DNA of 63,789 bases, filler included, from Octopus bimaculoides (taxonomy: Eukaryota): the NCBI RefSeq assembly GCF_001194135.2. It is 7 parts of 5 records of this genome, joined end to end, with 100 filler letters (N's around TTAATTAATTAA, not from the genome) between each part and the next. Parts side by side here need not be neighbours in the genome. Positions count along the whole stretch, not along the records: positions 38,279 to 54,769 come from NC_068983.1; 6 more parts are not named here. One strand, written 5' to 3'. Shown here in pieces: positions 38,179 through 54,769 of this stretch (position 1 is the first letter of the stretch; each line of letters opens with the position of its first letter). The notes under the pieces are model-generated. The model worked only from the letters and a program-made list of their open reading frames with translations, was not told the DNA's origin and searched no databases. The translations under genes and the position numbers were made by a program.

Positions 38179-38278
38179 NNNNNNNNNNNNNNNNNNNNNN
38201 NNNNNNNNNNNNNNNNNNNNNNTTAATTAATTAANNNNNNNNNNNNNNNNNNNNNNNNNNNNNNNNNNNNNNNNNNNN
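38179..38278. other. Artificial scaffold-joining linker
   Basis: N44-TTAATTAATTAA-N44. Confidence 0.97.
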
Positions 38279-39485
38279 TGGTAGTAGGGTTTTTTTCCTG
38301 GGTTTTGGTGGTTGTCCTTGTTGCTTTTTTTGGTTGGCGGCGGTTGGGCAACTGTCCTTGAGGTGTGCCTCGCTGCCGCATACATAACAACGTGGCCGCC
38401 TTCCTTCCACCACTACATATAACTTGTGGTCCTTTGCCAGTTGGATGTGTGTGGGGATCTTTTGGCACTCTTCTTCAGTGATGTGGAGGAGGACTTCGAT
38501 TTTTTTTCCTCTTTCCCAGTTTTTCTCCTCTGCAGTAGCAATTTCTAATATATTTGCCTCTTCCATTTCGAGACATATAGAACCTACTATCCACTGTGTT
38601 TCCACTTGTGAAGGGACATTCTTTACTGTCACCTTCGTCACTCTCTGTCCAAGATAACTCGGTATCATCACCAAGTCATCTGTGTGGAGAGAGAGTGTCG
38701 AAAATTCCTTCGCTAACTCTTCGCTCTTAAAGCGTACTAGGACCGTGGCAAATTTGCGTCCCCAAGTAACATGACTATGAAAGGGCCATATGAGTTTGAG
38801 ACAAATCTCAATTTTTTTGGGTGGAGAAATTCTCCGGTCGCTTGGTTTTCTTGGTGATAAGTCTGTATGATATGTGCTTCTTGTTTGTGTTTTCGATGAT
38901 TTCTTTTGGTATGTGTATTTGTACAGTGTCACCTTTCGTGAGAAGGGATTTTGTATCATTGATTTGTTTTTGGGTGAATGTTAATATTGTACTTTTTTCT
39001 TTCGTTGCATCGGCAAAATTTGTTTTTGTGATGCTGGCAGATATGTTGTTTGTGGCGTTGTTTATCTTGTTCGTCTTGTAGTTGTTGATGGTGGTGTTGG
39101 CAGTGGTGTTGGTACTACCAGGTTCAAAGGTGGTGGTAGTGGCAGCAGAGTTTGTCGAAGTAGTGGTGGTGTTGAAGGCCGGTGTCCTGTTGTTGCTGTT
39201 GCTGTTGTCACTGGTAGTAGCAGTGGTGAAGACAGTGGTCGTGTTAGCAAGGACATTTGTGTCGTTGTCGTTGCTGTCTTTGTCGTTGTTGTCACTGGTG
39301 ACGGTGGCAGGCAAGACTGCTGTAGCAGCAGAGTTTTTACACGTGATGGTGGTTGAGGCAGCAGCAGTTGACTCAGAATCATTGCTCTTCTTCATCACTT
39401 GTCTGCGTTCATGCGGAACGGCATTAAGTGTTTTCGCCTCTGGCATTAAGAGCGGGAAATCAGCCTCGTTGAAAACCTTAGCCAT
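38279..39485 (-). mobile_element. L1/Tx1-type ORF1 (gag-like) unit 2: T/N-rich N-terminus, RRM-like region, CCHC zinc knuckle; one frameshift; cut by scaffold end
   Basis: MAKVFNEADFPLL... (39485-38808) continues +1 at an A7 run (~38812-38818) into KKIEICLK..FATVLVRF..PSYLGQRVTKVTVKNVP..YVVVEGRRPRCYVCGSEAHLKDSCP; C-x2-C-x4-H-x4-C at 38389-38348. Confidence 0.8.
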
Positions 39486-40391
39486 ATTTGCTTTACAAAA
39501 TATGGCGAGGATCGAGGAAGACGTTTTTGAATTTTGGGAAATAAGGCTCTAAATAGAGCTATTTCCGATTTGAAATATATATTTTCCCGGAGTATTTTNN
39601 NNNNNNNNNNNNNNNNNNNNNNNNNNNNNNNNNNNNNNNNNNNNNNNNNNNNNNNNNNNNNNNNNNNNNNNNNNNNNNNNNNNNNNNNNNNNNNNNNNNN
39701 NNNNNNNNNNNNNNNNNNNNNNNNNNNNNNNNNNNNNNNNNNNNNNNNNNNNNNNNNNNNNNNNNNNNNNNNNNNNNNNNNNNNNNNNNNNNNNNNNNNN
39801 NNNNNNNNNNNNNNNNNNNNNNNNNNNNNNNNNNNNNNNNNNNNNNNNNNNNNNNNNNNNNNNNNNNNNNNNNNNNNNNNNNNNNNNNNNNNNNNNNNNN
39901 NNNNNNNNNNNNNNNNNNNNNNNNNNNNNNNNNNNNNNNNNNNNNNNNNNNNNNNNNNNNNNNNNNNNNNNNNNNNNNNNNNNNNNNNNNNNNNNNNNNN
40001 NNNNNNNNNNNNNNNNNNNNNNNNNNNNNNNNNNNNNNNNNNNNNNNNNNNNNNNNNNNNNNNNNNNNNNNNNNNNNNNNNNNNNNNNNNNNNNNNNNNN
40101 NNNNNNNNNNNNNNNNNNNNNNNNNNNNNNNNNNNNNNNNNNNNNNNNNNNNNNNNNNNNNNNNNNNNNNNNNNNNNNNNNNNNNNNNNNNNNNNNNNNN
40201 NNNNNNNNNNNNNNNNNNNNNNNNNNNNNNNNNNNNNNNNNNNNNNNNNNNNNNNNNNNNNNNNNNNNNNNNNNNNNNNNNNNNNNNNNNNNNNNNNNNN
40301 NNNNNNNNNNNNNNNNNNNNNNNNNNNNNNNNNNNNNNNNNNNNNNNNNNNNNNNNNNNNNNNNNNNNNNNNNNNNNNNNNNNNNNNNNNN

Positions 40392-41861
40392 CCGCATTAG
40401 GGTAGAGGGATTTTAAAGTGTGGTGTAATATTGGCATGATATGGTAAATTTTTATATGATTAGGTGGCGTCGTGTATGGGTGGTTGTTTGTTTTGATGTT
40501 TTTTGTTGTGTTTGTTTTTGTATTTATGTAGTTCATTAATTCTGTGTTTGTAGTGTCTGTTGCTGTGAGCATGTTTTCTGTATGTGTTCTTGTGGTGTTG
40601 ATGTCTGTGGTATGTTTGGAGACGATGGTTTCGGGAGATGTATATCTCCCTGCTTTGTTGGTGTTTGCATTTGGTTTGGTTCTTTTTTTACTCCTTTTCT
40701 TCCGCACTTTTCGGGCTAGTTGCCACTCACTACTGCTACTTTCGTCCTCGGACGAGTCTTCTGGGGAATCGGAAGTGGGTAAGGGCATGTCGTGTGCTTG
40801 TTTGTTGAAGTGGGTGTGTTGTTGATGGTTGTTGATTATCTGCTTGTGGTGTATGTGATGTGGGAGAAAGAGAATTAGTTTTTGTATTGTCTTTTGCTTT
40901 TACAGTTTCCTTAGTTCTTGTAGTTGTTTGTGTTTTTTCGGGTACATTTGTTGGTGTAGGCGGGTTTGGTTTGTGGGATTCTTCTGTCTTGCTCCTTTTG
41001 CTCGTTCTTTGTGTTGGTGGTGGTGTGGGTAGTCGGGGTCCATTTTTGGCTGTTTTTCCTTCTTCTTGTTTTTTGTTATCTGTTGNNNNNNNNNNNNNNN
41101 NNNNNNNNNNNNNNNNNNNNNNNNNNNNNNNNNNNNNNNNNNNNNNNNNNNNNNNNNNNNNNNNNNNNNNNNNNNNNNNNNNNNNNNNNNNNNNNNNNNN
41201 NNNNNNNNNNNNNNNNNNNNNNNNNNNNNNNNNNNNNNNNNNNNNNNNNNNNNNNNNNNNNNNNNNNNNNNNNNNNNNNNNNNNNNNNNNNNNNNNNNNN
41301 NNNNNNNNNNNNNNNNNNNNNNNNNNNNNNNNNNNNNNNNNNNNNNNNNNNNNNNNNNNNNNNNNNNNNNNNNNNNNNNNNNNNNNNNNNNNNNNNNNNN
41401 NNNNNNNNNNNNNNNNNNNNNNNNNNNNNNNNNNNNNNNNNNNNNNNNNNNNNNNNNNNNNNNNNNNNNNNNNNNNNNNNNNNNNNNNNNNNNNNNNNNN
41501 NNNNNNNNNNNNNNNNNNNNNNNNNNNNNNNNNNNNNNNNNNNNNNNNNNNNNNNNNNNNNNNNNNNNNNNNNNNNNNNNNNNNNNNNNNNNNNNNNNNN
41601 NNNNNNNCTGTTGTTGCTGTTGTTGTTGCTGCTGCTGCTGTTGCCGGTGGTGATCGTAGCAGACATAGCTTTCATATTGGTGGTGGTGGTGGTGAGAGGG
41701 CTGTCAATATGTGTGGTTGCTGTTTTGATGACGTTCTTAGAAATTTCTTTTTGTGTGCGCGTGCAGTTTTCATTCTTTTTCTTCTCTAGCGTTCCAAGGC
41801 TAGGGAAATGATGTTCGAAGAAAGGACTGGAACAGCGTTCCAAAACAATGTTTCTCGACAT
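40392..41861 (-). mobile_element. L1/Tx1-type ORF1-like unit 1 (N- and C-terminal parts; core presumably in gap 41086-41607)
   Basis: N-terminal FFEHHFPSL plus T/N/S-rich linker (41861-41608). After the gap, one stop-free frame 41085-40392: TDNKKQEEGK..PTPPPT..DSSEDESSSSEWQLARKVRKKRSKK.., the acidic-then-basic tail typical of Tx1-like ORF1. RRM and knuckle not visible. Confidence 0.55.
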
Positions 41862-42065
41862 TTTTCCAAATGCCGAGAAAAAATTTATATTTTGACGGGG
41901 CTGGAACTGCCCCTAGGGGCCAATTCCTCCCTTCGAAAAAAATACACAAATGAAGCTTGGGTGCTTCGCACAGATTATATGAAAAACTTTTAAACAAATG
42001 TGGGCAATATAAGGTCAAAAAAAGGTTTACCTCTGCAGCCGATGTGACAGCACGTCCGTCAGAAG

Positions 42066-42099
<34 letters not shown>

Positions 42100-42152
42100 G
42101 CAGATAGATAGATAGGCAGATAGATAGATAGGCAGATAGATAGATAGATAGA
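42066..42152. repeat. (GATA)n/(GGCA) tetranucleotide microsatellite
   Basis: Direct reading. Confidence 0.9.
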
Positions 42153-42200
42153 TGCAATGTACAGAAGACAAAAACCGAGACAGATGAGGGAACAACAAGC

Positions 42201-42241
<41 letters not shown>

Positions 42242-42843
42242 TGTGTATGTGCGCGCGTGCGTATGTGTTTATGCGTTTTATGCACACATGTATGCATGCA
42301 CGTATAACTGGAGAGAGAGAGAGAGAGGGAGAGAGAGAAAATGAGAGAAAGTAAGAGAGGCAGATAGGTAGGTAGGTGGCTATAGACAGCCAAACATGTG
42401 TGATATGCGATGTTGAAGAAGAGAAACTAGCCAGTTCTGTATGTTTGGTCCGAATCACGTTCTCCCAGAACTGCTGTTTTTACTGTTCCCGTCTGTTTAC
42501 ATCAACGACTTAGTTCAATATACAACGACAAACGTCAATATTTATACTGAAAACAATCAGCGGTTCTTAGAACATCGCCTACTGGCGTCATTTTCGGCTG
42601 GTTTCTCTCGCAGAGATACAATCCGCTGGTTATTCGTTACACGCTCCTCGGTCTCTCTTCTATTAGTGCCATCCGGTTCTTTACATTGGCATCAAATCAA
42701 TGTCGTTATTGACCAAAGGTATCAAAACAAAGTTTGTTGAGTTCAGTGAGCGATTCCACTGTAAAATATCAACGAAGTGGTGTGTCCGGGGGGCCGGGTA
42801 ATATTGGAGAGCCGGGGTGCTGGGAAATAATAATAATAATAAT

Positions 42844-42875
<32 letters not shown>

Positions 42876-43360
42876 AATAATGGCTAGGTATACAGGGGGT
42901 TACGTTGAAAGGCGTGTTCGAACAATGAAACTAAATGGATGTTTGCTCTACGTGAAAGGAAACAGAACCACTGACAGCAAAGTAACTGACAGCCATTTTT
43001 AAACACTTCCACGCATGCGCAAACTGTTTCTCTCATACCCAAGCACAAACATTCAAGCTATTCCGTGGAATTTCTCGCTCACATTCTGCAATTAAACAAA
43101 ACAAGTGAATGTTGCGCTCATGCTATTTATTTGACATCTTTTACTTGTTTCAGTCATTAGACTGCGGCCATGCTAGAGCACCGCCTTGAAAAGTTTTAGT
43201 CGAACGAACTGACCCCAGTAATTATTTTCTATTAAGCCTGGTACTTATTCTGTCGCTCTCTTATTACTGAACAGCTAACTTACGGGGACGTAAACACACC
43301 ACCACCGGTTGTCAAGTAATGGTGGGACATACACTCACACACACATTATATATACATATA

Positions 43361-43687
43361 TCGTATTTGATGGCCAAAAAGACGTACCTTTTTTTTACCC
43401 CAAAATGGCTTCAAAAATCCCCCTGCGTCCAATGCAGGCTCAAAACTAGCCGGCGACCTATATATTTACAAAATGTGTGCTGCCATCTACTGGTGAACAA
43501 TCGCCTACGGTATGTTTATATCAAATGTGGATACAATAAATTGCTTATAATTACCGGTAACAACAAAGTTATACAGGTAAGTGGAAGAATTAAAACAATG
43601 TTTTAGTAGTAATTTATTTTACAAAAGTATAGCCAAGGCTAGGGTGCGTCCTATGCACTCGTGCGTCTTACAGGCCGTTAAATACGG
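43361..43687. mobile_element. 327-bp Tc1/mariner-pogo-type MITE
   Basis: Imperfect TIRs TCGTATTTGATGGCCAAAAAGACGTAC and GTGCGTCTTACAGGCCGTTAAATACGG, flanked by TA on both sides. Confidence 0.7.
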
Positions 43688-43704
43688 TATATACATCCAT
43701 ACCT

Positions 43705-44004
43705 GGTTGCCAGTGTAGTATGTAATCTACATGTTTCTGGTGTAGCTTGTATTCTACATTAGTTCAAATCGTATAGCTTGATATCTACACCGACTTTTTA
43801 ATGATATCCGTGTGTATACAAAGAGTCACAGTATCCATGTTTCTAGTATGAAATAAAAATCAATGAAAATTTTTTTCTTTTATTTTTTAAATGTTTAACT
43901 CATTCCTCTAATTATAATTGCAAATTTATAAAAAAAAGTTTGAAGGTAGATCGCAAGCGAGTCTAGATTTAAGTTGCTGTAGATCACAAACTACACCGGC
44001 ACCC
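43705..44004. mobile_element. 300-bp MITE, superfamily unassigned
   Basis: 27-bp TIRs GGTTGCCAGTGTAGTATGTAATCTACA and TGTAGATCACAAACTACACCGGCACCC (23/27 match); no clear TSD. Confidence 0.65.
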
Positions 44005-44005
44005 A

Positions 44006-44046
<41 letters not shown>

Positions 44047-44438
44047 CATGTAAAATAATGTACATTTAATACACATTAGAGATGCCCATAAGGAGCATCT
44101 AACCCGCTAGAAGGAGCAGCCAAGGCTCTACACCACAAAAAAGGGATAATTTCGAAAAGGAATGAAAAATAAAAACATTTACCATCTATATTTCGAACCA
44201 GGTTTCAAGTTATTTTAGAAAAACAAACTATTTATTCTGCCAGACCAACTATCATCAGCGAAATAGCCTAGAGCGACACTATATGCACGAGGCACTCCAT
44301 CTGACTTGTGCATATATGTCTAATTTTTCAAAATTACCGCGCATGTGCGGAATACCTAATCGGCAGCAAATACAAAAAAAAATACCCTTAGACTTATATA
44401 TATATAAGCATATAAATACACACACACACACAAACAGT

Positions 44439-44821
44439 GGAGGCACAACGGCCCAGTGGTTAAGGCAGCGAACTTGCGGTCGTAGGATCGCGGCTTCGAT
44501 TCCCAGACCGGGCGTTGTGAATGTTTATTGAGTGAATGTTTATTGAGCGAAAACACCTAAGGCTCCACGAGGCTCCGGCAGGGGCAGTGGCGAACCCTGC
44601 TGTACTCTTTCACCACAACTTTCTCTCCCTATTTCTATTGTACCTGTATTTCAATAGGGCCAGCCTCGTCACACTCCGTGTCACTCTGAATCTCCCCGAG
44701 AACTGCGTTAAGGGTTCACGTGTCTGTGGAGTACTCAGCCACTTGCATGTTAATTTCACGAGCAGGCTGTTCCGTTGATCGGATCAACTGGAACCCTCGT
44801 CGCCGTAACCGACGGAGTGCC
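44439..44821 (+). mobile_element. Full-length tRNA-derived SINE family B
   Basis: tRNA-like head, body matching 27919-28232, 3' tail ending AACCGACGGAGTGCC then (TA)n; internal 15-bp duplication GAATGTTTATTGAG(T/C). Confidence 0.88.
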
Positions 44822-44825
44822 GTAG

Positions 44826-44862
<37 letters not shown>

Positions 44863-45605
44863 AATATATGAGTATATGCATATATATGTACATGTATGTA
44901 TATACGTTCCTCAACATGTACATATAGATACATAACTGGGTACATGACGTGGCAAAAGAACAAGGACAAAATGGTAAATAATGTGCAACAAACAAGCAGG
45001 CCACATAGAAACATCCCCTTCCTCAGCTGCCAGCATTAAAACTCCGACGTTTCGAAGAATTAAGGCAGTACGCATCGTTAAAATGGTTCTTCCTACGAAC
45101 ACAAATTAAATTGTTTTCGTGGAGGGTAGTGGCGGACGGAAAACAAGACAGGAAAACGAAACGGTGAAATAAACAAACAAAAAGGCTGTACAGCCAGACG
45201 TGAAGTGTGTATGTCTTGAACGCTGTGAAGCACGTACAGGAGGGGCAAAGAAGTACGTGCGAGCTTGGTGATTCCAAGAACGAAAAGAAATAGCAGCCGC
45301 ACACACGTGACCAAGGCTGTGTGAAGAGAAAGAGTAGCAGAGGGAAAAGGAGGGGAGGAAGTAGAATAAAAGTGAGCAACGAGAGGTAGANNNNNNNNNN
45401 NNNNNNNNNNNNNNNNNNNNNNNNNNNNNNNNNNNNNNNNNNNNNNNNNNNNNNNNNNNNNNNNNNNNNNNNNNNNNNNNNNNNNNNNNNNNNNNNNNNN
45501 NNNNNNNNNNNNNNNNNNNNNNNNNNNNNNNNNNNNNNNNNNNNNNNNNNNNNNNNNNNNNNNNNNNNNNNNNNNNNNNNNNNCTGTAAGCCTGTTGTAT
45601 GTATG

Positions 45606-45652
<47 letters not shown>

Positions 45653-45888
45653 CAGGCTTCTTTTAGTTCCCATCTAGCAAATCCACTGACAAGTTTGGGT
45701 TGGCCCGAGGCTTTGGCAGAAGTCATTTGCCCAACGTGACATGCAGTGAGAACTCGAAACCATGCGGTCGGGAAGCAGGATTCTTACCACGCAGCCACTC
45801 CTGAGTCTCATCTTATTCTTAATAACCTTCTGGAAAATTCAGAAGTGAATATTTGGCCTCCATCGGCGAATACCTCGTCTCTTTAGAC

Positions 45889-46150
45889 CAGCGGTTCTCA
45901 ACCGGGATCAATAAGATCTTTGGGGATCCATACGACCCTTAAGGGTCCATATAACCCTGGCGGTCCCTATAAGATTTTGTTGTTAGAATTTATCAGTAAT
46001 AAATTGGTCATACTTTGCCAATACACGAAATATTTTATTGATCTTTTTTTTGTACAATTCATAAGAATTTCGAAGATATGATAACATTTTTAGAATAGCG
46101 AATGGCTACGAGGGTTCTTCTGAGTAAAATAGGAATTAATAATCCAGACT
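45889..46150 (+). mobile_element. hAT (Charlie-like) element left end or MITE fragment
   Basis: Begins CAGCGGTTCTCAACC, the Charlie-type TIR, with GGGTCC subterminal repeats; partner TIR not found. Confidence 0.55.
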
Positions 46151-46775
46151 TAAACAGCTCACGATTTAATTTCGATTAGTGTTTGATGCTAACCACCACT
46201 TGTTGTAATAGTTCGTATGCAGCTGTGTCGATGGCCTCCTTATACCCCGTGCTTCATAACGATTATATAATATCAAATAAGCTATTAGTATAATATATAA
46301 AATTATCCTGGTACATTTTATAATTTAAATAAGCTGTAGTTATCTTATTAAACTTAGTAATTTTAAATTAGAGCAATCGTCTGCCAGCTGTCATTTTCCT
46401 ACACAAATACGATTAACATGAAATCCAGATATGTTATTGTTTAGCTTATAAACATTTTCAAGCAGATAACATTTTTCAAGGAAATTTAATATAGATTTTG
46501 AACGTAATATAATTTTTTTTTTTTTTTTAATTTTTATTTCCACAATAATTTGATTTTAGTGCTTCACTATTCTGGTTTGTTATAGTGACGTTAATCTTTA
46601 TCGGAAAGGTTAAATATATTTCGTGAGTATTTCAATGGCGATTATATCATAGCTATGTCTAAATCTCTTGATTTCTTTTCTTTTTTTCTAAATAAATGAA
46701 GGTAGAATATAATTGCAACATTTGATTTAGCGCCAAATCGCAAGAACACAAGACAATGATATTTCAAGCAGGGAG

Positions 46776-47965
46776 GGCGGCGAGCCGGCAGAATCATTAG
46801 CACGCCGGGCAAAATACTTTGCGGTATTTCGTTTACCGCTACATTCTGAGTTCAAATTCTGCTGAGGTCGACGAGCTTTCCAAATTGTTTGTTCGTTGGG
46901 CGAAATGTTTAGCGAGATTCGATCCGTCTTTACGTTCTTAGTTCAAATTGCGCCGCGGTCGACTTTGCTTTTCATCCTTTCGGGATCGATAAAGTATCAG
47001 TTAAGAACTGGTGTCGATGTAATCGACTTAGCCCCCTCCCCTCAAAATTGCTGACCTTGTGCAAAAATTTGAAACAATTATTATTAGTATTTGGCGGTGG
47101 GAAATGTTTACACAACATAAAAAATAACGATTTTCTTAAAAAGATTTTGGATTTAAGCTTTTTTATATTCTTTTCTACTCTAGGCACAGGGCCCGAGATT
47201 TTGTGGGAGAGGACCAGTCGATTAGATCGACCCTAATATGCAACTGGTACTTAATTCATCGACCCCGAAAGGATGAAAGGCAAAGTCGAACTCAGCAGAA
47301 TTTGAACTCAGGACGTAAAGACAGACGACATACCACGAACCATTTCGCCCGGCATGCTAATGTTTCTTATTTCTTTGCTGCCCACAAGGGACTAAACATA
47401 GAGGGGACAAACAAGGACAGACAAAGGGGGTTAAGTCGATTACATAGACCCCAGTACACAGCTGGTACTTAATTTATCAACCCTGAAAGGATGAAATGTA
47501 AAGTCGACCTCGGCGGAATTTGAACTCAGGACGTAAAGACAAGACGACATACGACGAACCATTTCGCCCGGCGTGTTACCGTTTCTCCCAGCTCAACGCC
47601 TTAATTTGAAACCAACATTATTAGCATTTGGCGGTGAGAAATATTTACACAACAAAAATAAAATCAGATTTTGCATTTAATCTTTCCTATACGTTACCTT
47701 AAATAAAACTTTTAAATTGTATTTAATGTACAGCTTATAACTCCTATACATTTAATGGACTCTCCCAACATCTTAAAAACTGGAAGTTGTTCTTTATTTG
47801 ATATTGTATTTTTTTCGGTCTGTGTTCAAATTCCGCCGAGGTCGACTTTACCTTTCATCCTTTCGGGGTCGATAAATTAAGTACTAGTTGCGCACTGGGG
47901 TCGATCTAATCGACTGGCCCCTCCCCAAAAAAATTCGGGCCTTGTGGCTAGTTAGAAAAGGATAT
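46776..47965. mobile_element. Cluster of five SINE family A monomers (+ 46776-46872, + 46890-47075, - dimer 47163-47600, + 47820-47965)
   Basis: Mutual similarity; the minus dimer has the same monomer-1 tail (CCCTTTGTCTGTC..GGGCA..AAAGAAATAA) as 26849-27281. Confidence 0.85.
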
Positions 47966-48230
47966 TGTATTTTTTGCTTTCTTATTTATTTATTAGTTTA
48001 TAAGTTAATCTTTACACACACACACACACACACACACACAGGCGCGCGCATGTTATGTACGGGGCTGCCTTTGTTTTTGCTGGTCAACTGGATGACATCA
48101 AGGTCCGTCTTGTATTCGTCTATATTTTCAAATGTTTGCGCGCGTCAGTGTGTGCATGTATATGTATGTGTGTGTGAGAGAGAGAGAAAGAGAGAGAGAG
48201 TGTGATAGAAAGAGTCTTTCTATGTGTCGT

Positions 48231-48515
48231 GAAGGCACGTAGCTTAACAGTGACGGTGTTCGGTTCACGATTGTAAGGTCGTCGGTTCGAATCCTGGCAG
48301 CGCGTTGGGTCCTTGAGCAAGACACTTTATTTCACGTTGCTCGTGTCTGTTCAGCTGGCAAAAATGACTTTGTACCTCGCTGAATCTCCCCGAGAACTAC
48401 ATTAAGGGTACACGTGTCTGTGGAGTGCTCAGCCACTTGCACGTTAGTTTCACGTTCAGGCTGTTCCACTGATCGGATCAACTGGAACCCTCGTCGTCGC
48501 AACCGACGGATTACC
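48231..48515 (+). mobile_element. Chimeric SINE: family C head and CORE-like domain joined to the family B 3' tail
   Basis: 48231-48365 matches family C (GTCCTTGAGCAAGACACTTTATTTCACGTTGCTC); 48377-48512 matches 44680-44818. Confidence 0.8.
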
Positions 48516-49933
48516 ACATTTTTTCATGTGTGTGTGTGTGTGTGTGTGTGTGTGAGTTGTCAGGGGCAATGGATGGGACAATTGAGAAGCCGGGTGGGAG
48601 GACAGAAGGGTGGTTGATGGCAGAAAGGTTGACCGGGACGGACACAAACTACAGGAGAGAAGGTGCGATTGATACGGAGGCAAGGGTGCAGGTACGGGCT
48701 GCAGGAATAAAGTTGGATGGATGACCGCGTCGAGTAGATTCGCATGAGTCTGTAGTTGGTCTCACTGTTATAAATAACCATATTCTCTACTCTCCACAGA
48801 CTCTTGCATGGCAACTGACCTTACCAAACATTTAGAAATAACGATTTCAACTTTTAGCGCAAGGCTAGTAATTTTGAGGGAAAGGATAAGTCGATTACAC
48901 CGACCCCAGTATTTAACTGGTACTTATTTTATCGACCCCGAAAGGACTAAAGGTAAAGTCGACTCCTGCGGAATTTGGCCCGGCGGCACACAAGTGATTC
49001 TGCCGGTTTGCCGCCTTCGGGGACTTTGAAATAACGATCAACAATAACCTCAACCTGTTGGAGCGCCTACGTCACTAATAAAGTTGAAATGGCTAGACCA
49101 AAATATTCATAGCTGTGGAGAAGAAGAATATGTAGTGATAACGAATTCTTGCATCGCCACAAAACCTCAAATTTATGGGAACAGAAACGGGATTAGGAGG
49201 CTGTTATGCCTTTTCTCAAAACTTTTGTGGTGTAAACAAAGTGAACGAGTTTTTAAGCGAGACTCGAAATCGAGGCAACCATTCTTTCCATCGAGTTTAG
49301 CTCTTAAACCATACAATTCTCTTGAGTATTGTAATTCTTAGCACAAAAGTGGAACTATCAACTGGAATAATGGCCAAAGAAATGAAATCAATTAATAGAG
49401 TCTTAAAATAGATCGGTATCTAACTGCATTAGATATTCCAGGCGATTACAGAATGAATAATTGATAAACGTTTAGATGGGTTCACAGGGTTCCCCAATGA
49501 GAAAAACTATGCCATTGAACTAAGATTTACTTCAATCGTATATCATGCTTTTTACAATCTTCGTGGCAATGTGATTGGTTTAGAGGGAACCATATAAGCG
49601 GCCATTGCAATGTAAATTTTACTACTTAACTCAGGATAATTGCCAAGAGTTGGTTTTTAGCTGAAGAATGAAACAAATATTTAAAAATAAAACCTTTTTA
49701 ATGGAAGTGTTTTGCAATAAAACAGTAAACTGTGGTTAGCAATGAAATTATTTACCACAAAAGAATAGAATCATAGAAATGGTAAAGCGCTGCGCAAAAA
49801 TTTTTACAATAGATAATGCTGCCATCTCAATGATTTAAATTCAAATCATACCTGGTTGCACTTTGTTCTTAATCCCTTAAGGTCCGTAATATAGATATCA
49901 CGCGGGAAACTGTCGTAATTTTATTGATTTTAT

Positions 49934-50359
49934 TGGTTTTCTATAAACGTGTGGATTCGCAAAACATGATTGCATGAAAGCTAGCAGATATATAATGATG
50001 TGTCTATTCATTCTTGTACAAATCGTTTAAAAGGGAGGTGTTCTGCGAAATACACCAGAGATCAGTATTTTCAGGTTCAAATCTGTGAGAAGGAAATGGG
50101 AATAAATACATATGTTATTGTTTAAATTCTTGCCGTTCTTTGTACACCTCAGTTTGGCAGATATCAACATGCATCAGCAAATAATTTACTGATTTCTATA
50201 AACGAAAGCCAATACTTTAGTTTAGAATCATTGATCTTGAATAGCTTTGACTGAAGAGACACAAAATATGGTCAAAACATTTTACTGGTTTTCTATAAAC
50301 GTGTGGATTCGCAAAACATGATTGCATGAAAGCTAGCAGATATATAATGATGTGTCTAT
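49934..50359 (+). repeat. Perfect 74-bp direct repeat (49934-50007 and 50286-50359)
   Basis: TGGTTTTCTATAAACGTGTGGATTCGCAAAACATGATTGCATGAAAGCTAGCAGATATATAATGATGTGTCTAT twice. Confidence 0.9.
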
Positions 50360-50779
50360 CCTGTCTGGTACAAATCTCAAAGACCCCTTACGTCAATGAA
50401 CTGCATGTTCTATGAACACACATCATCCAAAGGGACATATAATAGTGGTTAGCATACTCGCGTTACGAATTAGATATTAGAATGCGTTTGCTAGAAATAT
50501 CGCTTGGAAAGACTCTTTTCCGGAATCAATAAGGAAATTATTTTCAAAAACTGCTATCAGTTTGAAGAGATTTGTTAACTGGTTTCGATTTTGGCTTAAA
50601 GCGGTTTCTTTACGGTAATAATTGTTTCAAATATGAAAGAACATATAACTGTTATAAGGATTGCTTAATTAACAAATAACCATCCACGACTTCTCCCATA
50701 TTATCATGTTATTGTCATAGATATGATATTGCTCTGCATTTACAATTACGTTGGCCTGCATTATTGCCTCTAATTCTAA

Positions 50780-51440
50780 GGCGGCGACCTGGCAGAATCG
50801 TTACCACGCCGGGGAAAAATGCCTAGCAGCTTTTCGCCCGTTTTTTGCATTCTGTGTTCAAATCCCGTTGAGAGTGACTTTGCTTTTCATCCTTTTCGGG
50901 TTCAATAAAAAAAGTACTTGTCGAGCACAGGAGTCCCTATAATCGACAAGCCCCTTTCTCCAAATTTCAGGCCTCGTGTCTATAGTAGTAAGAACTATTA
51001 GATCGAATTGTTGCCGATTGATGTGTATTTATCGGTTTGTTTAAGCATGGTTTCATTAGAGTTTTTTTGGTGTTTTTACTTGTATTTTTATAACTTAACA
51101 CTGCTATTACCTTGATACGTTTCCAAACGAGGATAACAAACGTTGATAACACAAGCAAAAACCAAAAGCCAACAGTTAAAAAGGTCCACATATTCAGATA
51201 ACGAACGGAATATAATAATAATAATAATAATCTTTACTACTCTAGGCACAAGGCCCGAAATTTTGGGGGGAGGGGCCAGTCGATTAGATCGACCCCAGTA
51301 CGCAACTGGTACTTAATTTATCGACCCCCGAAAGGATGAAAGGCAAAGTTGACCTTAGCGGAATTTGAACTCAGAATGTAAAGACAGACGAAATATCGTT
51401 AAGCATTTCACCCGGCGTGCTAACGTTTCTGCCAGCTCGC
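50780..51440. mobile_element. Inverted pair of SINE family A copies (+ 50780-50995, - 51231-51440)
   Basis: Direct similarity, tail-to-tail orientation. Confidence 0.85.
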
Positions 51441-51989
51441 NNNNNNNNNNNNNNNNNNNNNNNNNNNNNNNNNNNNNNNNNNNNNNNNNNNNNNNNNNNN
51501 NNNNNNNNNNNNNNNNNNNNNNNNNNNNNNNNNNNNNNNNNNNNNNNNNNNNNNNNNNNNNNNNNNNNNNNNNNNNNNNNNNNNNNNNNNNNNNNNNNNN
51601 NNNNNNNNNNNNNNNNNNNNNNNNNNNNNNNNNNNNNNNNNNNNNNNNNNNNNNNNNNNNNNNNNNNNNNNNNNNNNNNNNNNNNNNNNNNNNNNNNNNN
51701 NNNNNNNNNNNNNNNNNNNNNNNNNNNNNNNNNNNNNNNNNNNNNNNNNNNNNNNNNNNNNNNNNNNNNNNNNNNNNNNNNNNNNNNNNNNNNNNNNNNN
51801 NNNNNNNNNNNNNNNNNNNNNNNNNNNNNNNNNNNNNNNNNNNNNNNNNNNNNNNNNNNNNTTTTTGAAAGTTACAAAAAACATGAATGCAGAAATAACA
51901 GCAAACTCTTTTGAAAAAAGAAAAGTAAAAATACCAAAGAAATATTTTGACAAAGTGAAATTTACGTGTGTTTTTTTTCCAACTGAAAC

Positions 51990-52450
51990 CTCCGCCACGT
52001 ACGCCGGTGGAATAAACTTCGGCAATGTGTTTGAGAATTGTATAAAAGTTCTGGAAATTTTTCTCCGCCATAAATCCATACATTTCTCGATACGTAGATT
52101 CGTCGACGCGAAACCGTTTCATATGGCCAGATTATTCAGTGACATACTTCAACCGTCTTTTGATTCGAGACCAATATGCCTCAATTCGTTTTGTGCAAGC
52201 GCAGGTTTCAGAGTCAACGAAATTCGTTGAATGGTTCACTATTCGGTAAATATAGCCAGGTTGATGTAAATTTCTATACCTGGCCCATTTATCGCTATTA
52301 ATTACAGAACCGGGCAACACATTTTCTATTATCAGAGCTTCCAGTGTTGCTGTGCTTCGGTCGGGTACGCGCTGTAAAAATCCTTTCTTCACAATGGTGT
52401 CATGACACCTGGCAACCCACGTTTCATGGCCTACCCTCCCTACGTTGTCA
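51990..52450 (-). mobile_element. Merlin (IS1016/IS1595-related) DDE transposase C-terminal fragment
   Basis: NVGRVGHETWV..KKGFLQRVPDRSTATLEALIIENVLPGSVINSDKWARYRNL..VNHSTNFVDSET..TKRIEAYWSRIK, then frameshift to RVDESTYREMY..KHIAEVY. SDxWxxY, VNHS..FVD and IExxW are ISXO2/Merlin hallmarks. Confidence 0.88.
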
Positions 52451-52538
52451 TATCCTCCCTCCCTTTGTCATGTGACTCCGGGAAATTACTGTGAAAGAAA
52501 TCTTTGCAGAAAGGTGAGTAGATTGATTACATATTTCC

Positions 52539-53002
52539 GGCGATCCTTCGATACTAGGCCATTACAACTTCCGGTCGTTGCGCGCACGCATACTGATTAC
52601 ATGATCGTATAGTGCGTTTATATGTTTAAAGTTTCAGTTCGGATGGCACCTTACTCACTCGCACCTTGGCCACACGTTTGCCGCAGTACGAAGGCAAGAG
52701 CACCCATTCCTCTGTCCTTATTGCCTCTGTGGAGTGCTTTATTGCTTCTTCCTCCGTTGTGAAGCGCACCTCCACAGTGGCGTATCTCCTCCCTATACTG
52801 ATTACATGATCGTATAGTGTGTTTATGTGTTTAAAGTTTGAGAACCGTATGCATCTGAGGGGGAGAAGGTTTGAGTTTCTATTTAATGTTGTCTTTTCAT
52901 ATTTTCAAGTCATTGAAAAACAAACGCACTATACGATCATGTAATCAGTATGCGTGCGCGCAACGACCGGAAGTTGTAATGGACTAGTATCGAAGGATCG
53001 CC
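52539..53002. mobile_element. 464-bp non-autonomous DNA element with 81-bp TIRs and a captured LINE ORF1 fragment
   Basis: TIRs 52539-52619 and 52922-53002 are 80/81 identical and start GG; flanks CATATTTCC and CATATTTCT (9-bp TSD, 1 mismatch), compatible with Merlin or MULE. Confidence 0.88.
52635..52793 (-). pseudogene. 53-codon fragment of an L1/Tx1-type ORF1 RRM region inside the TIR element
   Basis: GRRYATVEVRFTTEEEAIKHSTEAIRTEEWVLLPSYCGKRVAKVRVSKVPSEL aligns without gaps to GRKFATVLVRFKSEELAKEFSTLSLHTDDLVMIPSYLGQRVTKVTVKNVPSQV (ORF 38231-38959); 27/52 identical by hand count. Confidence 0.85.
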
Positions 53003-53031
53003 CATATTTCTTTCATTATTTGTGCGATTTA

Positions 53032-53840
53032 AGGCAGCAGAAACGTTAGCAGGCCGGGCGAAATACTTAGCAGTATTTTGTCTGTCTTTACTTTCTGAGT
53101 TCAAATTCCGCCGAGGTCGACTTTGCCTTTCATGGTCGATAAATTGAGTACCAGCTGCGTACTGGAGTCGATCTATCGACTGGTCCCCTCCCCAAAAGTT
53201 TCGGGCCTTGTGCCAAGAGTTGAAAAAAAATTATTTGTGAGATTTGACTGNNNNNNNNNNNNNNNNNNNNNNNNNNNNNNNNNNNNNNNNNNNNNNNNNN
53301 NNNNNNNNNNNNNNNNNNNNNNNNNNNNNNNNNNNNNNNNNNNNNNNNNNNNNNNNNNNNNNNNNNNNNNNNNNNNNNNNNNNNNNNNNNNNNNNNNNNN
53401 NNNNNNNNNNNNNNNNNNNNNNNNNNNNNNNNNNNNNNNNNNNNNNNNNNNNNNNNNNNNNNNNNNNNNNNNNNNNNNNNNNNNNNNNNNNNNNNNNTTT
53501 TCAGAATCTGAATCTCCATAGCCGAAAATGTAGGATTCCGTAAACAAAAAAGAAATATCTAAAGGGTGAGAGGAGGGGCCTTTACGTCTCCGCCATGTGT
53601 GCCCTGATACCAACATATTCTTTTCTACTCTAGGCACAAGACCCGAAATTTTGGGGGAAGGGGGCAGTAGATTAGATCGACACCAGTACGCAACTGGTAC
53701 CTAATTTATTAATTTATCGACCCCGAAAGGATGAAAGGCAAAGTCGACATCGGTGGAATTTGAACTCAGAACGTAAAGACGGACGAAATACCACTAAGCA
53801 TTTCGTCCGGCGTGCTGACGATCCTGCCAGCTCGCCGCCT
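53032..53840. mobile_element. Inverted pair of SINE family A copies (+ 53032-53225, - 53615-53840)
   Basis: Direct similarity, tail-to-tail across an N gap. Confidence 0.85.
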
Positions 53841-54705
53841 CATAACTACAATAATAATAATAATAATAAGCAATCAATGTTAAAAACAAAGTGAATTGAC
53901 TACAGTGAGAATCGAAACCAAATCGCAGAATCAGTTACCTGAAAAATTATTTCCTATTCAACTAAACTTATTTCTGATTATAGGAATTTAAGGGTTACTT
54001 CTTGGCACGTGTGTTTGTACATCTGTGAGGAGCATTGAGGTTTCTGATACATTAAATAAATATGTGAGGCAACCAGTTGGGGGGGGCAGGTGGGGGAGAC
54101 CAAGAACTGTATTCTAAGGCGATCTAATGAAAAACGGAGATAACCGAAATAATTTCTTTTAACTGATGTTTTTAAACGGAAGAACATTGTGCACAGAACT
54201 GAGAAACGAATTATCAAAGCGTAAATAATGTTATCGTAGGTTCAAATGGAATCAAAGACTGAAAAAGCAGTGGAAAATTTGACATTTTTTTGAGTGTTTG
54301 TTGATAAACCTGGCTGAAAGTTATCCCTTAATAAAATATAAAAGAAATGCGGAACGCATTTAAAAAAAAAGAGTTTTTTGAATGTTTAACACGAGACCGA
54401 CTGCGGAGCTTTGCTGTGGTCATTCATTTTCTTACTAATGGCAGCAAAATCTCCCATAAATTAATTACGTTGATCATGGCTGAAACATCTTGGATTATAG
54501 GTCTGCTTCATCAGAGTTGATTTGTAATTAAGCAAAAAGTTCACATAAAAGATTAGCTGAAAATATTTCAAACAGAAGATCAATCGTTTATTGTAACCCT
54601 AGATAGACTATAGCTGATAAGAAACATGGGATGGACATAGGCAGAAATAGGTTCGATCATAGCTTTGAGGTATCATGGCTGACTTTACAGCATGATCTCT
54701 CATTA

Positions 54706-54769
<64 letters not shown>

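Follow-up and report, generated by a model that had tools for sequence, protein, structure and literature searches.

Organization of the element

The stretch of DNA analysed here (the window; 63,789 nucleotides, filler included) is composed of seven parts of the Octopus bimaculoides genome (GCF_001194135.2), among them a 16.5-kb piece of NC_068983.1 at window positions 38279-54769. In this piece lies an element of 464 bases (52539-53002) that encodes no transposase. The element and its flanking TSDs are organized as follows.

52530-52538, no strand: left TSD, CATATTTCC, matching 53003-53011 at 8/9 positions
52539-52619, plus strand: left TIR, 81 bp, 5'-GG start, 80/81 complementary to 52922-53002
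52590-52634, plus strand: duplication copy A, 45 bp, made up of the inner 30 nt of the left TIR and 15 nt of subterminal sequence
52635-52794, minus strand: cargo, 53 stop-free codons derived from within an ORF1-like (gag-like) retroelement gene, recognized by protein homology
52795-52839, plus strand: duplication copy B, 45 bp, 43/45 identical to copy A, first 30 nt pairing with 52922-52951
52840-52921, plus strand: native non-cargo core, its minus strand corresponding to the N-terminal 22 residues of the gene model P0001
52922-53002, minus strand: right TIR, 81 bp, ending CC-3', inverted match to the left TIR
53003-53011, no strand: right TSD, CATATTTCT, matching the left copy at 8/9 positions

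In a repeat scan, the two TIR arms (52539-52619 and 52922-53002) were complementary at 80 of 81 nt (99%), with one mismatch. The TIR begins with GGCGATCC and finishes with GGATCGCC. Its 19-nt terminus, GGCGATCCTTCGATACTAG, is found at only two sites in the window, which are the two ends of the element (0 sites expected by chance). The flanking TSDs, CATATTTCC on the left and CATATTTCT on the right, are identical at eight of nine positions, and by our own estimate a match this good in fixed register would arise by chance with a probability of ~1e-4. An empty insertion site is expected to read ...GATTACATATTTC[C/T]TTCATTATTTG.... When the element was folded as single-stranded DNA, the 81-bp stem dominated the structure (z = -19). 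The initial annotation, made from the sequence alone, had proposed the 81-bp TIRs (80/81) and the 9-bp TSD (8/9); the repeat scan reproduced the former and the comparison of 52530-52538 with 53003-53011 the latter, and this anatomy supports the description of the locus as a short non-autonomous TIR element with a TSD.

No similarity of the native core (52840-52921) to other sequence in the 16.5-kb piece was found, and an Rfam scan of the same piece gave no family at gathering score. A pattern scan with the TIR terminus returned 0 matches in public viral contigs and 0 in genome contigs, collections in which almost no octopus DNA is covered. An exact 19-nt match to the terminus was present in the metagenome contig Ga0154020_10007462 (5685-5703); since the similarity ends at the 19-mer and the collection is large, we judge this to be a chance match in an unrelated, probably bacterial contig.

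The cargo lies within a direct duplication of element sequence

The cargo is enclosed by a direct repeat. The 45-bp duplication (52590-52634 and 52795-52839, 43/45) that had been described as bracketing 52635-52794 was recovered and can be extended to 52590-52637 and 52795-52842, with 45/48 matching positions. Within the 45-bp core, copy B differs from copy A by one CpG>TpG change and one A/G transition. The duplicated unit consists of TIR positions 52-81 together with 15-18 nt of subterminal sequence, and the first 30 nt of copy B can also pair, as an inverted repeat, with the inner portion of the right TIR. Since copy B holds these inner 30 nt of the TIR, collapsing the duplication gives back a simple MITE: with the cargo removed, 52539-52634 joined to 52840-53002 forms a MITE-like element of 259 bp. 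The duplication thus argues that the fragment went into a pre-existing element, and from it alone we infer a cargo-less progenitor MITE of about 259 bp.

The cargo is related to an octopod ORF1-like protein family

The cargo (52635-52794, ~160 bp) has a 53-residue stop-free reading on the minus strand, GRRYATVEVRFTTEEEAIKHSTEAIRTEEWVLLPSYCGKRVAKVRVSKVPSEL. Aligned without gaps to the ORF1-like protein of the window (38279-38959, minus strand), this peptide is identical at 27 of 53 positions (51%; BLASTP 57 bits, E 1e-16), which confirms the stop-free 53-codon minus-strand peptide for which 27/52 identities had been given before. Nucleotide comparison of the cargo with the ORF1-like gene of the window gave no similarity at the DNA level. 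With 51% protein identity and no DNA similarity, the window's own ORF1-like copy is ruled out as the donor of the cargo.

The cargo peptide, the ORF1-like protein of the window and the two O. bimaculoides relatives of the latter were combined into a family profile. Searched against 1.84 billion representatives, it matched 386 clusters (50% identity) at E <= 1e-3, and the sources of ten matches that were looked up were O. bimaculoides, O. sinensis, Argonauta hians and Logan/ENA contigs. Among the best 150 of the 386 cluster matches, the cargo peptide was most similar to the gene model P0001 (98%), followed by P0016 (83%) and a few proteins at 57-67%; to the ORF1-like subfamily of the window it is about 50% identical. 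P0016, the closest family relative apart from P0001 among these 150, is the O. bimaculoides RefSeq protein XP_052829386.1, whose gene sits on a 58-Mb chromosome.

In the family alignment, the cargo region is flanked by conserved blocks, RKIExAT..IExCLK on its upstream and WLVA...NW.G on its downstream side, and the element carries unrelated sequence at the places of both blocks. The cargo itself extends in the family gene from the invariant glycine of GRxY to PSEL. As the flanking family blocks are missing from the element, the cargo corresponds to an internal gene fragment, and at the level of protein comparison it is a foreign internal fragment of an octopod ORF1-like multicopy family. Its position within a multicopy, ORF1-like, CCHC-knuckle family indicates that it is most likely TE-derived.

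A near-identical chimera in a gene model

Among 5.8 billion proteins, the only close match of the cargo peptide was P0001 (UniProt A0A0L8FN65, A0A0L8FN65_OCTBM), an O. bimaculoides protein of 91 aa. By tblastn, residues 2-91 of P0001 align with window positions 52898-52629 in one frame, with 86 of 90 residues identical. The aligned stretch begins in the native core, takes in copy B and the complete cargo, and ends in the first codons of copy A. P0001 therefore reproduces both cargo junctions, and its ORF begins within MITE sequence and extends across the ORF1 fragment. At the level of the predicted protein, a second and near-identical chimera exists.

The window copy differs from P0001 at four residues, and the ATG with which P0001 starts is out of frame in the window, most simply explained by a 1-nt difference in the A run near 52893. 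Owing to these four differences and the out-of-frame ATG, the window copy cannot encode P0001, so that this protein, judged from the comparison of the two sequences, very probably comes from a locus other than that in the window. All close relatives of proteins from the window belong to O. bimaculoides, although the databases also contain RefSeq proteins of O. sinensis; in principle, P0001 might instead represent the ortholog from a very close relative and not a paralog. The recurrence of both junctions in P0001 argues that the chimera is no one-off misassembly, and it is probably present in at least two copies in the O. bimaculoides genome. With P0001 at a different locus, the chimera would have moved or would otherwise have been duplicated after the capture.

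The donor family resembles a LINE ORF1

The ORF1-like gene of the window had been placed at 38231-38959. We found it to be longer and frameshifted, occupying 38279-39485 on the minus strand: a 225-aa ORF at 38808-39485 (minus strand) includes the sequence TILTFTQKQINDTKSLLTKGDTVQIHIPKEIIENTNKKHISYRL, a match to the N-terminus of P0002, a relative from O. bimaculoides. By eye, 40400-40788 (minus strand) is similar to the C-terminal tail of P0004, a relative from O. sinensis; this tail is basic and of low complexity.

The CCHC knuckle of the window protein, CYVCGSEAHLKDSC, gave a weak Pfam match. In the family, Pfam zf-CCHC was detected in 11 of 81 members (best E 4e-7), with a single knuckle per protein, and a PDB profile search with the family matched only the knuckles of retroviral nucleocapsid and ZCCHC8. 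Ten long members were inspected with Pfam: four contained the CCHC knuckle (one weakly), three were chimeric models and three had no match, and a reverse transcriptase or endonuclease was detected in 0/10. The description of the donor family as an ORF1-like, gag-like retroelement protein is borne out by these results.

Type I LINE ORF1p, according to the summary of Khazina & Weichenrieder (2009) in PMC4120745, carries one or more RRMs immediately upstream of a CCHC knuckle. The donor family is similar in that its single CCHC knuckle is directly preceded by about 140 residues in which beta and alpha elements seem to alternate; it is also multicopy and fragmentary across octopods. The pattern upstream of the knuckle was seen in an AlphaFold model calculated from an alignment of only four rows (pLDDT 45), and as a feature of this model the alternation of strands and helices is only suggestive of RRMs. 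In contrast to type I LINE ORF1p, an RRM fold in the donor family was not recognized: Pfam and PDB sequence searches gave no match to the region upstream of the knuckle, and the knuckle alone was recognized. The architecture of the donor family fits type I LINE ORF1p and may point to a LINE origin, the "RRM region" to which the cargo had been assigned being putative. The proposal that the element had captured part of a LINE gag-like gene stands as far as a fragment of an ORF1-like, gag-like CCHC family is concerned, and the LINE identity of this family is putative. A linked ORF2 for endonuclease and reverse transcriptase was not seen in the ten long members or in the 16.5-kb piece, beyond whose edge the sequence downstream of the window's ORF1-like gene lies.

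Fragments of the family also occur in the gene models P0091, P0112 and P0066, beside WD40, LDL-receptor class A or astacin domains. Either TE fragments were exonised in these models, or the models are chimeras of the annotation.

The carrier has Merlin-like ends

Following Feschotte 2004, Lopes et al. (2021, PMC8101967) describe Merlin elements by a conserved terminal 5'-GG-3', TIR lengths of 24-462 bp and TSDs of 8 or 9 bp. The 81-bp TIR of the element, with its 5'-GG-3' end, lies within this range of lengths, and its 9-bp TSD (CATATTTCC / CATATTTCT, 8/9) agrees with the stated TSD sizes. O. bimaculoides is among the most Merlin-rich animals, with 191 sequences (PMC8101967). In its 5'-GG-3' terminus, TIR length, 8/9-bp TSD and Merlin-rich host, the element resembles non-autonomous Merlin elements as described there, and we consider the carrier, on its termini and target site, to be putatively Merlin-type.

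The 9-bp TSD, long TIRs and GG terminus also fit a Mutator-like (MULE) element. Of the earlier suggestion of a Merlin- or MULE-type carrier, the hallmarks of TIR, 5'-GG and TSD thus stand for both superfamilies and do not choose between them. The superfamilies hAT, Tc1/mariner, PIF and piggyBac were set aside for the carrier, as TSD length and termini do not fit. The TSD sizes and termini typical of these four disfavour them for an element of this kind.

A Merlin transposase remnant is located next to the element, at about 52084-52386 on the minus strand (DDE_Tnp_IS1595, PF12762, E 5.5e-14, profile positions 52-152 of 153). It contains an in-frame stop at 52132-52134, is truncated upstream, and shows weaker homology by eye to about 52467; its end lies ~70-150 bp away from where the element is inserted. 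No similarity between this remnant, whose ends lie in gaps or under insertions, and the TIR of the element was detected, so that descent of the element from this copy is not demonstrable. Possibly, a Merlin-like MITE inserted into or next to a defunct Merlin copy.

Origin of the chimera

The origin that we favour, and regard as probable, is that a Merlin-type MITE underwent aberrant repair with ORF1-like filler and was subsequently transposed as a unit. The starting point would be a MITE of about 259 bp, corresponding to 52539-52634 plus 52840-53002. In one copy of this MITE, a double-strand break or an excision gap would have been repaired aberrantly in a single event. Gap synthesis on a template copy would have proceeded from both ends, from the left to position 96 and from the right to position 52, which leaves an overlap of 45 nt. 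The ends would then not have annealed but would have been bridged by ~160 bp of filler, for which an ORF1-like (gag-like, CCHC-knuckle) retroelement gene would have served as the template. The product, MITE positions 1-96 followed by the filler and by positions 52-259, would carry the cargo within a 45-bp direct duplication. Having kept both TIRs, the chimera could then have been transposed whole, giving rise to the TSD seen here and probably to the second O. bimaculoides copy. Mobilisation would have occurred in trans, by a transposase that recognises the TIRs of the element. Among the sequences searched, which include almost no octopus DNA, neither an autonomous element (Merlin or other) with matching TIRs nor a donor of the cargo at the DNA level was found.

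The capture itself may have taken place by template switching during gap repair or by another filler-DNA route. A gap-filling/template-switch route was described earlier for Ac/Ds and P elements. For animal Pack-TIRs, an origin by gap-filling/template switching is documented (Tan et al. 2021, Nat Commun 12:4280, PMC8277862). The divergences within the chimera are small and comprise 2/45 positions between the duplication copies (one of these changes being CpG>TpG), 1/81 between the TIRs and ~1.5% to P0001. Taken together, they agree with a single capture in recent time and subsequent transposition. For the cargo, the role of a passive passenger is most likely.

It could also be argued that the ORF1-like segment belongs to the consensus of the whole family, either as an old capture or as part of a deletion derivative of a larger composite element, in which case there would be neither a separate cargo-less MITE family nor ongoing sampling of foreign sequence. 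P0001, the only other detectable copy, indeed carries the cargo with identical junctions, and a cargo-less copy was absent from the sequences searched, among which there is almost no octopus DNA. However, the duplication copies match at 43/45 positions and extend into the TIR, which argues for a recent insertion into a complete element, on a time-scale similar to that of the TIR (1/81) and P0001 (~1.5%) divergence. We therefore regard a family-wide consensus cargo as unlikely.

Less likely again is a retroelement route, in which the filler was deposited by reverse transcription primed at a nick or break in the MITE, or by end-joining capture of ORF1 cDNA or RNA, the 45-bp duplication then being a long TSD. 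The family to which the cargo belongs is retroelement-like and abundant in octopods, and an insertion at staggered nicks formally yields a direct duplication around the insert. Against this route stands the nature of the cargo, which comes from inside a coding region and shows neither a 3' end nor a tail or simple repeat at its two junctions; it is this lack of a 3' end or tail in an internal coding sequence that makes the route less likely. In addition, 45 bp is long for a LINE TSD, and the SINE at 53031-53229 has a TSD of 16 bp.

Finally, a short-read misjoin, or a coincidence in situ of two partial MITEs around a resident ORF1 relic, is hardly credible even in a repeat-packed region of a gap-rich draft piece with five N runs, as both junctions are found again in an O. 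bimaculoides protein that was predicted independently and differs from the window at four residues, and as the outer TIRs are flanked by an 8/9 TSD, which is expected for movement as a whole unit.

Comparison with known capture systems

The element can be compared with several known kinds of transposons. Like the Pack-TIRs of animals and the Pack-MULE and Pack-CACTA elements of plants, it carries a few hundred bp of foreign sequence between the TIRs of one non-autonomous element, with the TSD outside. The proposed gap-filling/template-switch origin at a break in the element is shared with Pack-TIRs, and the chimeric ORF that is annotated as a gene in one octopus copy (P0001) is a further likeness. 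The initial annotation knew of no description of such a capture, which was overstated: Pack-TIRs in 100 animal genomes, together with a template-switch model, were published in 2021 (PMC8277862). In that survey, 370 animal Pack-TIRs were found in 55 of the 100 genomes, of which 87% were hAT or TcMariner, none was a Pack-MULE and four of 370 were multicopy (PMC8277862). It selected for non-TE cargo and makes no mention of octopus or molluscs (PMC8277862).

Structurally, a Pack-TIR is defined by foreign sequence enclosed by the two TIRs of a single element and by a TSD that flanks the entire unit, and this is found here. The definition also includes a cargo from a non-TE host gene with an identifiable parent, whereas the closest relative of the octopus cargo is 83% identical at the protein level. 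As the cargo is most likely TE-derived, the element falls outside the operational definition of a Pack-TIR, although it works like one. Several differences set it apart from the known cases: its cargo is a mobile-element fragment and not a host gene as in Pack-TIRs and Pack-MULEs, its carrier is Merlin-like, in contrast to the 87% hAT/TcMariner and the lack of Pack-MULEs among animal Pack-TIRs, and it is probably multicopy, compared with 4/370. Moreover, the cargo is bracketed by a 45-bp duplication of the element, and internal sequence was not replaced.

For Ac/Ds, P and Mu elements, filler DNA has reportedly been observed where gap repair was abortive (Rubin & Levy 1997; Nassif et al. 1994). 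The octopus element resembles these cases in its internal rearrangement, in the ectopic filler at the junction and in the retention of both termini; SDSA starting at the two ends, with subsequent end joining, would be in keeping with its structure. The Ac/Ds, P and Mu cases usually lose internal sequence and have short fillers, whereas in the octopus element nothing was lost, 45 nt were duplicated and the filler is 160 bp long.

The element is a real and fairly ordinary case of a mobile element that gained a piece of another during DNA repair, and a transposon with a scrap of another acquired via filler DNA will not surprise a specialist. It adds modestly to what is known through its clean duplication footprint, its Merlin-like carrier, its cephalopod host and its probable multicopy state. 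The cargo together with the 45-bp duplication, including part of the TIR, provides a clean and datable footprint of aberrant break repair inside a cephalopod DNA transposon. It suggests that Merlin-type elements, which are unusually abundant in O. bimaculoides, are able to take foreign sequence along and disperse it. Should the genome contain several copies that differ in their TSDs, the element would be a rare multicopy addition to the animal Pack-TIRs, from a superfamily and a phylum of which the survey makes no mention.

The direct biological consequence is probably small, since the cargo comes from another mobile element and there is no sign of selection. It is tempting to speculate that octopus harbours a multicopy Pack-TIR family of Merlin type that is active now or was so recently and whose antisense ORF1 cargo is non-neutral, and we think this very improbable. 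If it were true, such elements might seed chimeric proteins, comparable to the 91-aa P0001, and antisense transcripts might feed small-RNA silencing of the donor retroelement family.

The surrounding 16.5-kb piece

The 16.5-kb piece is interrupted by five assembly gaps (39599-40391, 41086-41607, 45391-45583, 51441-51861 and 53251-53497). The SINE at 53031-53229 (plus strand) lies 20 bp from the right TSD of the element and has no Rfam family above threshold; its 16-bp TSD, ATTATTTGTG(C/A)GATTT, is located at 53015-53030 and 53230-53245. Related SINE copies in both orientations were observed at about 46783-46996, 47172-47367, 47812-47951 and 48845-48977, and further ones at about 50844-50967, 51234-51440 and 53622-53839. 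Two direct repeats are also present. The first (49927-50024 and 50279-50376) is 98 nt long and 95% identical, with copies 352 bp apart; the second (44673-44821 and 48367-48515), with 149 nt, 87% identity and a distance of 3.7 kb, is probably another dispersed repeat family. Adjacent microsatellites occupy 42050-42260, consisting of (AGAT)n with AGGC variants followed by (GT)n.
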